DNA of 63,831 nucleotides, filler included, from Pelomyxa schiedti (lineage: Eukaryota; Protista; Evosea): the NCBI GenBank assembly GCA_020536535.1. It is 11 parts of 11 records of this genome, joined end to end, with 100 filler letters (N's around TTAATTAATTAA, not from the genome) between each part and the next. Parts side by side here need not be neighbours in the genome. Positions count along the whole stretch, not along the records: positions 41,742 to 47,731 come from JAHLWZ010001458.1; 10 more parts are not named here. One strand, given 5' to 3'. The notes under the pieces are model-generated. The model saw only the letters and a program-made list of their open reading frames with translations. It did no database searches and was not told the DNA's origin. Positions 41,742-47,731 of this stretch are shown in pieces. Position 1 is the first letter of the stretch. Every line of letters starts with the position of its first letter. Made by a program: the position numbers and the translations under genes.

Positions 41742-43548
41742 GCGCCCTCCTGGCGCCTCTCTCCGCCCCTCTCCAGTGATCCCTGCGACGTCAGAGTGAT
41801 GGAAAGGTCGGAAGGGAGGCTAATCCCACCATGAGGCCACCCGCCTCCCAAAAAAAAAAAAAACAACGAGAACCCCCAAGACCCGACCCCAGGGAAAAAA
41901 GATAAAAAAAAACCCCAAAACGAGGAGACCCCCAAAGAAAACAAATTCGTCGAAGCCTGCCCGCCCCTTGCTCCGGGGGTGCGGGCAGCGAATCCCCCCC
42001 ATGGCGAAGCACCCCACAAAAATGTAAAACCCCAGAGACCCAGACCCCATGGGAAAAAAATTCGAGCGCCTCCGTGCCCCTCTCCAGTGATCCCTGCAAC
42101 GCCAGAGTGACGGAAAGGTAGTAGGGGAGCTCACCCCCCCCAAAAAAAAAAAAAGAAATCCCCGACCCCAGGGAAAAAGTAGAACCCCAAAACGAGGAGA
42201 CCCCCAAAGAAATTGAAAACCCCCAAGACCCGACCCCAGGGAAAAAAATTCGGCGAGCGCGTCCTCCTGGCGCCTCTCTCTGCCCCTCTCCGGTGATCCC
42301 TGCAACGCCAGAGTGATGGAAATGGTGCAGAGGCGGGGCTAATCCCGCCAGGAGGCCACCCGTCCCCCCGAAAACCCCCCAGCCCGACCCCAGGGATAAA
42401 AAATAATAAAAAGCCCCCAAAATGAATTCGTAACCCTGCCCGCGCCCGAGCTGCAATCGGAGCTGCTGGCAGCGAATTCCCGCGAAGTGCCCCAACAAAA
42501 AAATTGAAAACCCCCAAAGACCCGACCCCAGGGAAAAAATACGGCGAGCGCGCCCTCCTGGCGCCTCTCTCCGCCCCTCTCCAGTGATCCCTGCGACGTC
42601 AGAGTGATGGAAAGGTCGGAAGGGAGGCTAATCCCACCATGAGGCCACCCGCCTCCCAAAAAAAAAAAAACAACGAGAACCCCCAAGACCCGACCCCAGG
42701 GAAAAAAGATAAAAAAAAAAACCCCAAAACGAGGAGACCCCCAAAAAATAAATTCGTCGAAGCCTGCCCGCCCCTTGCTCCGGGGGTGCGGGCGGCGAAT
42801 CCCCGCAGTCGAAGCGCCCCAACAAAAAAATCGAAAACCCCCCAAAAGCCCCGACCTCAGGGGAAAAAATGTAACTCGCCCAAGGTTGCCCCCAGTCTCT
42901 CACCGGGGGACGAGTCCCCAAGGAAACCCCAAAGCCCCGACCCCAGGGGAAAAAAAGAAAAGAAATAAAACGTAAAACCCCAAATACGAAGACCCCCACG
43001 AAATAAATTCGTCGAAGCCCGCCCGCCCCCCTAAATTGCTCCGGGGGTGCGGGCAGCGAATCCCCCCACGGCGAAGCACCCCACAAAAATGTAAAACCCC
43101 AGAGACCCAGACCCCATGGGAAAAATGCAGCGCCCCCTACGGGTACCTCTCTGCCTCTCTCCAGTGATCCCTGCAACGCCAGGGTGAGGTGATGGAAAGT
43201 GGGCAGAGAGGTTTATCCCAGGAGGCCAAAAAAGAATGAAACCCCCAAGACCCGACCCCAGGGAAAAAGATTAAAACCCCCAGAGGAGACCCCCAAAAAA
43301 AACGAATTCGGCTATGCATGCCCTGGATCCAGGTGTGTGAGCACGAATCCCGGAAAAAACCCCCGCCCGACCCCAGGGATAAAAAAAGAATTAAAACCAA
43401 TATAACCCCAAGACATGGAAGCCCCCCAAAGAACGAGAGCCCCAACAGATACCGATCCTTCGACTGACCCCCCGTAAAAACCCCCTCCCCCAGAAAAAAA
43501 AACTACGGCGGCCCTAAAAGAAGAAGAAAAACCTTTAAGGGTTCAGAC
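41742..43548 (+). repeat. Modular GC-rich / poly-A subrepeat array
   Basis: CCCGACCCCAGG occurs 9 times plus 1 variant. CAGTGATCCCTGC-type motif occurs 5 times. An about 255-bp block repeats at offset 808 (41742, 42550). Confidence 0.9.
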
Positions 43549-44511
43549 TCGGCTCCGTGACTCTGGTGCCTGGCGCCTCCGGCACCGGCGAAGGTGGCCA
43601 CAAAGTGTAGAGTGCCAATACCTTCGCCGGCCTGCCTGCCGCTGCCAGCCGCCTGGTCGAGGAAAAAAAGTCTGAGCCCTTGTGGGAAAGCTTGGTGCAC
43701 GGGGGGCGGGGCGAACTTGAGCATTTTTTTGGACTGGCTATTTGGAACTTTCGGACTCGGCTTGGCTTTTTCCCCTTCTGTGGCCCACGACGCTTGCTCT
43801 TGGCGTCCCGCGAGAGAAAGGCGGGATATCCTCGGCCGCGTCGCGCGCCCCGTGTTGGGTGTAAATCCCCCCCTAAGCCCAGGACGAGCCGACGGATGCA
43901 GATGTCGGTCTGATAACTCGCTAGGTTCTCCCCCCCCCAGGCGCCAGCTGGTCGTTGCCGTGTGTAGTTTGGTCAGCGGAGCGCGAGAGGCGGCGAGGCT
44001 GCGGCCCTCTGCCGCGGGAAGTCGAAGCGGCACCTGAGCCGATGCAGCGGCGGCACTTAATCGAATTGGCCAACACGCCCGTTGGTGCGTTCGAACCCCC
44101 GCCGACGCCGTCACGGCCAGCGATTGCCGCCGGTACTCCCCGCGGTCAAAGTCGTCCTGCAGCCGTCGGCGCCCCGAACGGCCCCGCGCGCCACTTGGGG
44201 CTGGTCCCGCACCGGCGCCACGCGTCGCACCCCGGATAAAGCCCCCCCCTGCCGAGAGATCCCCCCAGCAGGACGGGACGGCACCCCCGGGGTCTGCACA
44301 AGCGCCAGAGCGGGGCACTAGTGGCCCCGGAAAAAAAAAGGAGGAGAGAAGAGGAAGAAGAAAGGAGGACCGCGACCCCGGCGGCCGCTCGGAGATATTT
44401 TCCTCAGCCGCGTCGCGCCCCGAAATTGCGAGAAAGAATGCGGCGAGGGTCCTCGTAGAAGTGCAGGACCAGGCGTGGATGTAGCAGGCGTGACTGGCGA
44501 AAGTGGTCCGA

Positions 44512-44857
44512 CCGAGTCGGGTCCCTGGTGCACCGCCGAAGTGGATGGTTAGGGCGCCCTAGCATCCACTCGTCGACCCCAGGGGTCACCTCCGGCAGGT
44601 ACGGCCCCAACTTCCGCAGGTCGCCCCTGTGGTACCACGCATCCGAGCGGAGAAAGAGAGGGAGCCAGGCCACCGAAAAAGAAGAGAGAACCCCCCAATA
44701 AGTAACCCCAGGAAAAGTGGGCCTGGTCAAGAGCGGGAGACCCGGAAGTTGGGAACGGGAAGCGGACTCGGCCGAGTCGGGTCCCTGGTGCACCGCCGAA
44801 GTGGATGGTTAGGGCGCCCTAGCCATCCACTCGTCGGCCCCAGGGGTCACCTCCGGC
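44512..44857 (+). repeat. 86-bp direct repeat x2 (44512-44597, 44772-44857) plus a partial third copy near 44987; each full copy contains a hairpin
   Basis: Hairpin GTGGATGGTTAGGG-CG-CCCTAGCCATCCAC at 44801-44830, with a one-base-deleted version at 44541-44569. Confidence 0.85.
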
Positions 44858-45760
44858 AAGCCGGCAAAGCTTCCCGTAACCAGCCGACGGCCAACCGCGA
44901 GGAAGAGCTGGTGCGGCCGCGACCCCAGCGAGCCGCAGCCGAGTCCTGGCGAGCGGGCATGGCAGAGAGCGGGCGGGCGCAAGGGCCGACCGAGTCGGGT
45001 CCCCGATGCAGCGGGGGTCACCTCCGGCAGGTACGGATCCTAAGTTCAGCGCCCCCCCCGTTCCTCCCTGTCTTTTCGTCCAGGTCTCCCCGAGAGGAGA
45101 AGAGCAGGAGCGGCCGCGCGACCCCAGAAGCGGCGACCGCCCCGGGGCCGATTTTTTTCGGCCTTGCCTGATCCCCCCAGCTAGAGGCAAGGTTGAGCCC
45201 CGGGAAAAAAAAAAAAGAAAAAAAAAGGGGTTAGGGCCCAAGCCGGCTAAGGGGAGCCAGGCACACGGACCAAGAGTTCATCCTATGGGGAAGGGGAGAA
45301 AGCAGGGGAAAAAAGGCCTGCTTGAGACCCTCCCTTGGGGTGCCTCTGGTCCTTCTGCTTGTTGCTTCCCCATGTCGGTTTTGGGCTCTTCCTTTTTTTT
45401 TTAATCTTTTTTTTTACCTGCTCAGTTTCCTCTTGCCTGCCCTGACTCCCTCATGCCTCCTGCAGAGTTGGGCTATTTTATTGCCCTCTGTTTTTTTTTC
45501 CCTTTTCTCTTTGGGGGAAAAACACAAATTCAGGTAATTGTTTTTTTCCTGACTTTGCGTTTTTGGGGGGTTTTATACATATGCCCCCAATGTTTTTTTC
45601 CCATTTTTGGGTGAAAACGCAAAGTCAGATGTCATTTCATGTGATATGACTTTGTATTTTTTTACCTGAAAATGGAACACACAGGTAACAAGGTTTTTTT
45701 TTTAATATTATTTGTTTTTTGGCGGCATGTGTCACTCTGTTTTGAAAATCATCTTAGCTG

Positions 45761-45890
45761 TTTTTTTCCCTTTTTTTCCCTTTTTTTCCCTTTTTTTCCC
45801 TTTTTTTCCCTTTTTTTCCCTTTTTTTCCCTTTTTTTCCCTTTTTTTCCCTTTTTTTCCCTTTTTTTCCCTTTTTTTCCCTTTTTTTCCC
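45761..45890 (+). repeat. Perfect tandem repeat (TTTTTTTCCC)13
   Basis: 13 exact 10-bp units counted directly. Confidence 0.97.
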
Positions 45891-46094
45891 CCTTTTTTTG
45901 TTTGTTATTATGTATATATCTTTAATTACCATTAAAAACACTGCACATATTTAAGAATTACAACATAAAATAACTTAACAGTGTGAAAATGGTGTCGAAT
46001 AGTCTTTAATCTATTGTAAACACATTGCATGCTTTGGTGTGTCACAGTGCTGAGCTTCTAACTAATTGACTTACAATATAAACATAAACTAACT

Positions 46095-47731
46095 CTCTTT
46101 GACATGGCCAACAGTGTGTAGCTGTTCACCAAAAGCTTGCATCTGTGTGTAAGGTGGGGGAAACTGTGTTCAATGGTTAATTTATTAGACTCCCCCACCT
46201 CGGATTTGCAACTGCGGCATCTGATGCTGAGCTGCTGGCCGATACTTGCGTGAAGTGCATAGAATGGGGAAAAGTTGCACAGGAGACGTGTTTCTTGGTA
46301 GAACCACTTTCAAACTATCCAAACACCTATTACCTAAGTGTTAACCATTGTTGGCGCACAACTGGAACTTCTCACAGGTAGACTTACACTTGGAAACGTT
46401 CCGATCAGCTAACAGTTGATCGCAACAGTCAGGAACGAGATAGCAGTGTGAAGACAGTGTCAAACGGTCCCCAGTGCTGCTAAAAACACGTTGCACACTT
46501 CAATGCAACAACGCCGTGCTGCAGTGCTGAGCTTTTGACTAAAATTGGCTTATGATATGTCAACCCTTGACATGGCCAACTGTGCACAGCGGTCCACCAA
46601 AAGCTTATACTTGTGTGTAGGGTGGGGGAAACTGTGCTCAATGGTCAATTTATTAGACTCCCCCACCTCAGATTCACTGATATCATCATTTACAATGAGA
46701 AATAAACCAATGTTAGTTAATAGACAAGGAATAAAAAAAACAACAAAGATTCCTCAGTGACTACTGTGAGTATCTTTGTAAAACCAAAGAAAAATAACAC
46801 AAAAACCTTTTTTGAGGTGAATGCAAGTGTTTTGGTCAAGTTATAAACTAAAGATACCAAGGTACACATTAAACAACAAGTACAGTTTTACCTTTTATAA
46901 TATGAACATAGTGTACAGTGATCCATCAAAAACTGGCACTTACATGTAAAATGAGAGAAACTGTGTGAAAATAGTGCTAACATGTTACAAACTTCTGTGT
47001 AACTATGTCATACCACAGCACCAAGTGGTAAACTAATCTCTTTACAACATAACCTCTTTGACCTGGCCAATAGCACACAGCAGTTCACTAAAAGCTTACA
47101 CCTGTGTGTTGAGTAAAAGAAACCTGCTCAATGGTTGATTTATGAAACTTCTTCACCTCAGATTTGCAACTCAGCATCTGGTGCCAAGCTGCTGACTGAT
47201 ACTTGTGTGAAGTGTGTAGAATGGGGAAAGGTTGCACAGGAGACATGTTTCTTGGCAGAACCACTTTTAAACACTCTTACCACATGCATACTGCGCGCAC
47301 AGAGCTCCTGACACAGCTTTGGAGCCACTCTTGCGTGGCTGAACACTCTGAAAGGAACCGATGGTTGCGAGGTTAACCCTAACCCTCGAACGAACTGTAT
47401 CATGGCGAAAACAGTGCCAAACCACTCTAACTGCCACTGGAAACACCGTGCACACTTTGGAATCACAACGCCACACCGTCGGGCCGAGGATCCCACCTCA
47501 CGCGCAGGTGCAAGCTTCTGGTGGACCGCTGCGCGCCGTTGGCCATGTCAAGGGGAGTCGGTCTATGTCAATGTCGTAAGCCGATCGGTCAGAAGCTCGG
47601 CGCTGCGGCCCGGCGTTGTTGCACCGAAGCGTGCAACGCGTTTCCAGCAGCACTGGGGACCGTTTGGCACCGTCTCCACGCTGCTATCTCGTTCCTGACT
47701 GTTGCGATCAACCGTTAGCCGATCGGAACGT
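46095..47731. repeat. Degenerate about 470-490-bp period repeat (units at 46095, 46564, 47054) plus an inverted CpG-rich copy at about 47495-47731
   Basis: Shared CTYTTGACATGGCCAAC...AAGCTT... units. The reverse complement of 47588-47731 aligns without gaps to 46396-46539. Confidence 0.85.

Follow-up and report, generated by a model that had tools for sequence, protein, structure and literature searches.

The window is the whole stretch of DNA analyzed, 63,831 nucleotides of Pelomyxa schiedti (assembly GCA_020536535.1), in which 11 parts of 11 records are joined end to end, and all coordinates given below are positions in this joined stretch. The locus lies on JAHLWZ010001458.1 (41,742 to 47,731), and every conclusion of this study is based on five repeat copies found at this single locus, on one short, repeat-only contig of 6 kb that ends at 47731 within one of the copies (C4, see below). 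No credible open reading frame (ORF) was found on the contig, no Pfam domain was detected in the ten ORFs tested, and no tRNA gene was found. An Rfam search yielded a single sub-threshold, miRNA-like match, which lies in the GC-rich flank to the left and outside the repeat family. Five ORFs of the contig starting with ATG were absent from the protein collection in an exact-sequence look-up, and the ORF spanning C5 and C4 had no match in a word-based search of proteins. When part b of the family and the most frequent motif of the left-hand repeats were used as patterns to scan metagenomes for further copies, there were 0 matches, as in pattern scans of viral contigs for related DNA. The features of the locus are as follows.

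43541-45199, no strand: GC-rich flank on the left, ~65% GC overall with peaks above 70%, non-coding, with short repeats of its own
about 45200-47290, no strand: AT-rich, CpG-poor domain of ~2 kb, 23-50% GC per 120 bp, observed/expected CpG (CpG o/e) of 0-0.56
45915-46326, plus strand: copy C1, with part a at ~45915-46062, part b at 46090-46206 and part c at 46207-46326; delimited by blastn self-comparison, alignments A1/A2 and composition (the start and the bounds of part a are approximate)
46396-46680, plus strand: copy C2, with part a at 46396-46539 (left arm of the inverted pair) and part b at 46564-46680
46925-47283, plus strand: copy C3, with parts a, b and c (the start is approximate)
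47291-47731, no strand: GC-rich flank on the right, 58% GC, CpG o/e 1.08, carrying C5 and C4
47358-47488, plus strand: copy C5, part a only, newly recognized in this analysis
47492-47731, minus strand: copy C4, with part a at 47588-47731 (right arm of the inverted pair) and part b at 47492-47570, cut by the contig end

A repeat search recovered 46396-46539 and 47588-47731 as an inverted pair of 144 nt, 88% complementary and 1048 nt apart, and both arms proved to be members of a five-copy non-coding family (C1-C5) in a blastn self-comparison combined with alignments. C1, C2, C3 and C5 are on the plus strand with a spacing of ~455-515 bp, and C4 is inverted at the contig end; the family is a short tandem array (period of ~470-515 bp) closing with an inverted unit. 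When ranked by transversions to C4, C2 is the nearest copy (9/237), followed by C1 (19/227), C3 (28/212) and C5 (27/132). C5 was detected with a transition-tolerant local alignment, in which it scored 100-104 against 34 +/- 5 for shuffled sequences, and is the most diverged copy, differing from C4 at 56 of 132 positions including the 27 transversions. Except for C5 at 47358-47488, no significant similarity to part c or to the rest of the domain was found in 47284-47495, the tail of C4. C5 and C4 together make up an imperfect fold-back; as a structured element it was rejected, its DNA fold being unremarkable (z = -2.2). We also rejected a fold-back element model in which part c is an inverted part a (z below 2.5).

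The copies are distributed over two compositionally distinct kinds of DNA. C1, C2 and C3 reside within the AT-rich domain, together with unique DNA and a (TTTTTTTCCC)13 array, whereas C5 and C4 lie just outside, in the CpG-normal flank. The edges of the domain are sharp, the composition changing within ~100-200 bp. On the left, CpG o/e is 0.91 over 43541-45340, and 300-bp windows of the GC-rich left part of the contig range from 51 to 73% in GC and from 0.77 to 0.91 in CpG o/e. Over 45941-47283, in contrast, the o/e values are 0.30 for CpG, 1.03 for GpC, 1.73 for TpG and 1.33 for CpA, and the ~700 bp from 46600 to about 47290 contain no CpG at all. Thus, CpG is short relative to GpC and TpG/CpA are in excess in the affected DNA only, which is the combination taken as a methylation footprint. 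The state of each copy follows its position. C3 is the most eroded one, with zero CpG across 46901-47283 and 35% GC in part a; C1 is also heavily eroded (30% GC and 1 CpG in part a), and C2 is lightly eroded (50% GC in part a and 9 CpG in the whole copy). Outside the eroded domain, C5 retains 53% GC with a CpG o/e of 1.03, and part a of C4 has 62% GC with a CpG o/e of 1.31. As the oldest copy, C5, is still at 53% GC while the younger C1 and C3 are eroded, location in the domain, rather than age or repeat status, sets the erosion. The unique stretches of the domain are as CpG-poor as the repeats, which lie within a few hundred bp (o/e of 0.24 at 45341-45940 and 0 at 46681-46900). The unit affected thus appears to be the ~2-kb domain and not the repeats as such. 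The first-pass annotation of this DNA, made from the sequence alone, had proposed a repeat-targeted system of cytosine modification or mutation; with C5 and C4 spared and the unique stretches equally CpG-poor, this proposal was not supported.

The base-by-base comparison of 46396-46539 with the reverse complement of 47588-47731 gave 17 differences, comprising 16 transitions and one transversion (T/G at 46517). All 16 transitions pair A/T on the left with G/C on the right, with none reversed (two-sided binomial p = 3e-5); ten of them fall on right-arm CpGs and the other six on non-CpG bases. This recount agrees to the base with what the first-pass annotation had reported for the gap-free pair. 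The annotation had also seen the trend go on in 46564-46625, and nine transitions in the same direction were indeed found between 46564-46626 and 47492-47554, along with one G>T and one opposite change. Over the whole aligned stretch of C2 and C4, one-way transitions amount to 30 versus 1 (p = 3e-8). The enrichment at CpG is borderline in the 144-nt pair only (10 of 36 CpG-site bases versus 6 of 53 others; Fisher p = 0.055) and clearer over the full C2 alignment (18/57 versus 12/93; p = 0.011), where it bears out the CpG enrichment claimed earlier. The 144-nt pair also contains two tandem GG>AA changes, at 46482-3 and 46502-3.

The substitution spectrum was then described for the three copies inside the domain relative to C4. 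Transitions have occurred at 53% (C1), 32% (C2) and 49% (C3) of the CpG-site bases, at 32%, 13% and 37% of the other C/G bases, and at 2%, 1% and 13% of the A/T bases, respectively. C-to-T changes are therefore seen in every context, transitions at A/T sites being 3-13 times rarer. The excess at CpG over non-CpG bases is significant in C1 and C2 only (Fisher tests) and, after correction for saturation, is a modest one of about 2-3-fold. Among the non-CpG contexts there is no preference, the transition fractions at CA, CC and CT in C1 being 0.30, 0.31 and 0.35 with CpG the highest. The two strands are affected equally (C>T/G>A counts of 30/26 in C1, 15/15 in C2 and 23/33 in C3), and runs tests found no significant strand-coordinated clusters (z = 1.1 in C1, -1.86 in C2 and 0.5 in C3); the equality of strands together with the lack of runs fits slow deamination on both strands. 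The value for C2 corresponds to a mild same-strand clustering. APOBEC/AID-type editing is disfavored, as there is no strand bias, no significant clustering and no 3' context preference when the 3' neighbour is tabulated. Among the G/C-A/T differences in the family, the ratio of transitions to transversions is ~5-6:1, and the implied equilibrium GC is 4-23%. The repeats of the left GC-rich flank, which served as an internal control, have a ratio of ~2.6:1 and change in both directions. The side remark of the first-pass annotation that the 118-bp element and a fold-back show the same CpG decay was consequently not borne out, since these left-hand repeat copies differ both ways with many transversions.

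One pair of copies alone cannot separate the loss of G/C in one arm from its gain in the other, and the remaining copies were therefore taken as witnesses. At the variable sites, with S for G/C and W for A/T in the order of C1, C2, C3 and C4, the patterns were WSWS at 20 sites, SSWS at 19, WWWS at 14, WSSS at 11, WWSW at 10, WWSS at 7, SWWS at 6 and SWSS at 6. C4 is never the lone copy with A/T (0 private losses of G/C), while the other three copies keep G/C at 11, 19 and 6 sites lost privately in C1, C3 and C2, respectively, and only C4 has G/C at 14 sites. In the witness test, the share of G/C in C5, C1 and C3 at the sites with W in C2 and S in C4 was compared with those at the sites where both have S or both have W. 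C5 carries S at 12 of 16 such sites, compared with 42 of 66 where both are S and 16 of 50 where both are W, and C1 and C3 behave in the same way. The hypothesis that all of the differences are gains in C4 is rejected with p = 5e-4 (C5), 9e-9 (C1) and 2e-3 (C3). The ancestral share of G/C at the sites in question is estimated at 0.6 to about 1, and the lower shares are expected if the sites are hotspots that decayed in the witnesses as well. We conclude that most of the differences between C2 and C4 are G:C-to-A:T losses in C2, as the earlier claim of erosion in one copy with the other spared would have it.

GC-biased conversion offers the opposite account, in which the ancestral copy looked like C2, and G/C was acquired by C4 once it had moved into the GC-rich flank. 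The one-way pattern by itself is compatible with either loss or gain, the 14 sites with G/C in C4 only could be read as gains, and parsimony on a transversion-based tree, ((((C2,C4),C1),C3),C5), places 6-10 A/T-to-G/C transitions on the stem of C2 and C4 and 2-4 on C4. However, 32-43 columns have an ambiguous root on that tree, and as parsimony is both ambiguous here and biased toward gains under parallel decay, the witness-copy test was put in its place. Besides the rejection by all three witnesses, the changes cluster at CpG/TpG/CpA, for which biased conversion gives no reason, and each eroded copy has private losses where three others keep G/C. An origin of the CpG-rich copy by GC-biased conversion, which the first-pass annotation had named as the converse of its reading, is thus rejected as the sole cause (witness p of 5e-4 to 9e-9) and we hold it to be very improbable as an explanation of the locus, while a minor contribution of GC gain is possible.

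The reading we favor, with a probability of roughly 0.4, is that the AT-rich block represents a heterochromatic, cytosine-methylated domain decaying by deamination of 5-methylcytosine (5mC). We propose that the tandem non-coding repeat, with its period of ~470-515 bp, straddles the edge of a ~2-kb chromatin domain (~45200-47290), inside which cytosine would turn into thymine far faster than any reverse change takes place. Putative enzymes of the DNMT1 family would methylate the domain chiefly at CpG, with less methylation in other contexts, and spontaneous deamination of 5mC would then convert C:G to T:A on both strands, so that CpG would be lost, TpG/CpA would pile up and GC would fall. C1, C3 and the younger C2 would have eroded in proportion to the time spent inside the domain, and C5 and C4, just outside, would have retained the GC-rich, CpG-normal composition of the flank. 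The 5mC-like spectrum pointed out in the first-pass annotation agrees with this reading in that the DNA holding the eroded copies bears a methylation-like footprint (CpG o/e of 0.30 versus 1.03 for GpC). The polarity, sequence contexts and strand symmetry of the changes and their restriction to one domain are observed, whereas we infer methylation, the enzyme and the chromatin state; as the CpG effect is only 2-3-fold, methylation is plausible rather than proven. In vertebrates, the CpG effect is 10-fold or more, far above the one seen here. CpG effects of a similar size and a shortage of CpG occur without DNMT1/3 in yeast mutation-accumulation lines and in several AT-rich protists, and a general AT-biased mutation spectrum without GC-biased conversion could account for the strong C>T bias at non-CpG sites.

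The main rival, which we consider rather unlikely in comparison, builds on that last point and assumes two compositional regimes and no methylation. Mutation would be strongly AT-biased throughout, most of the genome would be kept GC-rich by GC-biased conversion or selection, a non-recombining island of 2 kb would relax to AT, and the CpG excess would be an intrinsic context effect. Such a general AT drive is in line with C>T being high in all contexts with a CpG excess of just 2-3-fold, with the implied equilibrium GC of 4-23%, with erosion that tracks position and not repeat status, and with the fact that archamoebae include both genomes of 24-30% GC and one of 60.7% GC. Against it, a CpG o/e of 0.30 versus 1.03 for GpC and the lack of any CpG over 700 bp show a stronger focus on CpG than expected from an AT drive alone, the edges of the domain are as sharp as ~100-200 bp, and the ratio of transitions to transversions of ~6:1 in the G/C losses, versus ~2.6:1 in the control repeats, points to deamination. 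Improbable, in our view, is that the signature is real but the contig is non-archamoebal or chimeric, in which case the methylated DNA would be that of another eukaryote with ordinary CpG methylation and nothing on archamoebae would follow. The contig is a short, repeat-only piece whose origin is anchored by no gene, tRNA or Rfam match, and searches of the collections recovered neither related DNA nor a related ORF. Nevertheless, homologous copies that keep to the tandem period occur to the left and to the right of the composition boundary, which argues against a chimeric join there, and the composition of the flanks fits the 60.7% GC of the Mastigamoeba balamuthi genome, a consistency that proves nothing by itself. 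Nothing in the sequence, read on its own, suggested human DNA. Another account would have C4 unchanged because it is functional or was recently copied from a 'master' under selection, either an RNA gene or a mobile element that is still active, and would have C1-C3 as dead copies decaying by ordinary mutation, as in old versus young Alu. CpG decay of old copies of Alu/L1 in CpG-methylating vertebrate genomes resembles the present case in one-way changes of CpG to TpG/CpA relative to a source-like copy, equality of the strands and graded erosion; C4 has no private loss of G/C, divergence among the copies is graded, and the contig stops inside C4 as when an assembler meets a high-copy repeat. 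Unlike in vertebrates, however, erosion here goes with position and not with age, the CpG effect is weaker, non-CpG C>T is stronger, and the copies are in a local tandem/inverted arrangement instead of being dispersed insertions. C5 has escaped erosion despite its age, its divergence and its evident lack of conservation, so that selection on C4 is not needed for sparing. With no Rfam family, ORF or Pfam domain matching and no copy found outside the contig by the metagenome, viral-contig and protein word searches, we see only a small chance for a master copy.

It is highly unlikely that the duplicates were mutated by an active, repeat-sensing hypermutation system, be it RIP-like or based on a cytosine deaminase acting on DNA; RIP was one of the comparisons drawn by the first-pass annotation. 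RIP in most fungi converts CpA to TpA, mutates all of the duplicate copies and leaves AT-rich isochores. The likeness consists in nearly exclusive G:C-to-A:T transitions in repeated DNA and in a sharp-edged, repeat-bearing AT-rich block that adjoins GC-rich DNA, and the two tandem GG>AA changes (46482-3 and 46502-3) and the mild same-strand clustering in C2 (z = -1.86) could be counted on the same side. In contrast to RIP, CA, CC and CT are hit evenly (0.30/0.31/0.35 in C1) and CpG is the favored context, with no preference for CpA>TpA. The index (CpA+TpG)/(ApC+GpT) is 1.16 over 45941-47283, whereas RIP is indicated below about 1.03, and TpG/CpA are in excess and not depleted. The differences between C2 and C4 run 30:1 in one direction and are not reciprocal, C4 and C5 are untouched even though C4 and C2 have at least 240 bp in common, the unique DNA of the domain, within a few hundred bp of the repeats, is equally CpG-poor, and neither a strand bias nor strand-coordinated runs are seen. 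On these grounds the RIP-like part of the earlier reading is not supported. No gene of the DNMT4/RID type is tabulated for M. balamuthi (PMC12344493).

Returning to the reading of a methylated domain decaying by deamination, the literature searches turned up no paper on a methylome or on DNA methyltransferases of Mastigamoeba, only a supplementary-table listing, and no description of a RIP-like process in amoebae. To our knowledge, the Archamoebae (Entamoeba and relatives) are usually taken to be without canonical DNA methylation. In the table in question (Supplementary Table 1 of PMC12344493), M. balamuthi is entered with four genes of the DNMT1 family and no DNMT3, DNMT4/RID or DNMT2, and Entamoeba histolytica with DNMT2 only. 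The first-pass annotation had regarded a cytosine modification or mutation system as not known from archamoebae; this stands as far as papers on a methyltransferase or methylome in Mastigamoeba are concerned, but has to be amended in view of the four DNMT1-family genes tabulated (PMC12344493).

Two protists covered by the same source provide a closer comparison. In the amoebozoan Acanthamoeba castellanii, which possesses DNMT1/DNMT3, repressive CpG methylation on repeats is described for 3.4% of the genome, in repeat-rich, H3K9me-marked islands of an otherwise unmethylated GC-rich genome (PMC12344493). An island of this type would, over time, leave a domain-limited footprint of CpG decay. The present locus, known from its sequence alone, differs from Acanthamoeba in that non-CpG cytosines decay strongly here, while non-CpG methylation is given as background there, and in that DNMT3, present in Acanthamoeba, is not among the genes tabulated for M. 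balamuthi (PMC12344493). Naegleria gruberi, on the other hand, is reported to have DNMT1s only, the repertoire tabulated for M. balamuthi, and to methylate cytosine in each of the four CN contexts within heterochromatic repeat regions (PMC12344493). Methylation in all contexts would account for C>T at our locus not only in CG but also in CA, CC and CT. Nevertheless, Naegleria belongs to another supergroup, its methylation is described as low and variable from cell to cell, with no mutational footprint reported in that source (PMC12344493), and CpG is favored 2-3-fold here in contrast to its all-context methylation. By analogy with these systems, an archamoeba with a Mastigamoeba-like, DNMT1-only repertoire might have all-context heterochromatic methylation in the style of Naegleria, which over evolutionary time would act as a strong local mutator, carving kb-scale, sharp-edged, AT-rich and CpG-free islands out of a 60% GC genome and eroding the repeat copies inside; we put this forward as a speculative extension that is, at present, doubtful.

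The erosion footprint adds an example to a type already known, with the present evidence being one locus and an ordinary class of explanation. The locus illustrates how additional copies, used as witnesses, allow one-way transitions read as RIP-like to be checked on one and the same contig. If the extension to all-context methylation as a local mutator is true, the locus would be the first evidence that Archamoebae have genomic 5mC and bear the mutational footprint it leaves. If the contig is from a free-living archamoeba, it would provide a concrete and testable locus to set beside the four DNMT1-family genes tabulated for M. balamuthi, and would raise the questions of whether heterochromatic repeats are methylated by those enzymes, which contexts are involved, and whether methylation was lost en route to the parasitic Entamoeba.

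The following features were recognized in the window; C1, C2 and C3 are plus-strand copies of one non-coding repeat family, of which parts a, b and c are successive segments.

41742-43540, A+C-rich block, strongly strand-asymmetric (AT skew about +0.5, GC skew about -0.2)
44509-44597 and 44769-44858, 90-bp direct repeat (97% identity, 260 bp apart)
45761-45890, (TTTTTTTCCC)13 array inside the AT-rich domain, perfect (100% matches)
46153-46199 (C1), 46621-46667 (C2) and 47112-47157 (C3), plus-strand copies, hairpin region of part b
46207-46326 (C1) and 47165-47283 (C3), plus-strand copies, part c, about 120 bp, 3' of part b

The A+C-rich block was found to consist of nested modules with a common core motif, GACCCGACCCCAGGGAAAAA (at least nine occurrences), and includes a duplication of about 320 bp (41742-42059 versus 42550-42869, 92%). 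The differences among the module copies run both ways, and many are transversions. Both copies of the 90-bp direct repeat carry a palindromic core, TAGGGCGCCCTA, inside GGATGGTTAGGGCGCCCTAGC; partial self-complementarity was detected at 44783-44845 within the second copy, and near 44988-45035 the repeat occurs a third time, in partial form. The tandem array is surrounded by a T-rich, strand-asymmetric stretch (45341-45940). We rejected a telomere-like identity for this array, because T and G are on different strands.

In the right flank, C5 (plus strand, part a only) and C4, the inverted copy, form an imperfect fold-back (47358-47731) around part b of C4, the stability of which is unremarkable (DNA fold of -76 kcal/mol, z = -2.2 versus shuffles). 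As the contig end falls exactly inside C4, the inverted unit is seen only up to that point. Two of the differences between C2 and C4 are tandem GG-to-AA changes (CC-to-TT on the other strand; 46482-46483 and 46502-46503), too few for interpretation.

Part c of C1 and that of C3 are 85% identical at a spacing of 957 bp, yet this segment is missing from C4 and after C2. This distribution suggests either that the repeat has a higher-order unit of about 957 bp or that C2 has lost part c by deletion.

The hairpin arms of part b are GGTGGGGGA and TCCCCCACC in both C1 and C2, while both arms are eroded in C3 (AGTAAAAGA and TTCTTCACC). A compensatory change in the C3 hairpin was considered and rejected: G-to-A in one arm and C-to-T in the other only mimic compensation, and the arm changes are simply decay on the two strands.
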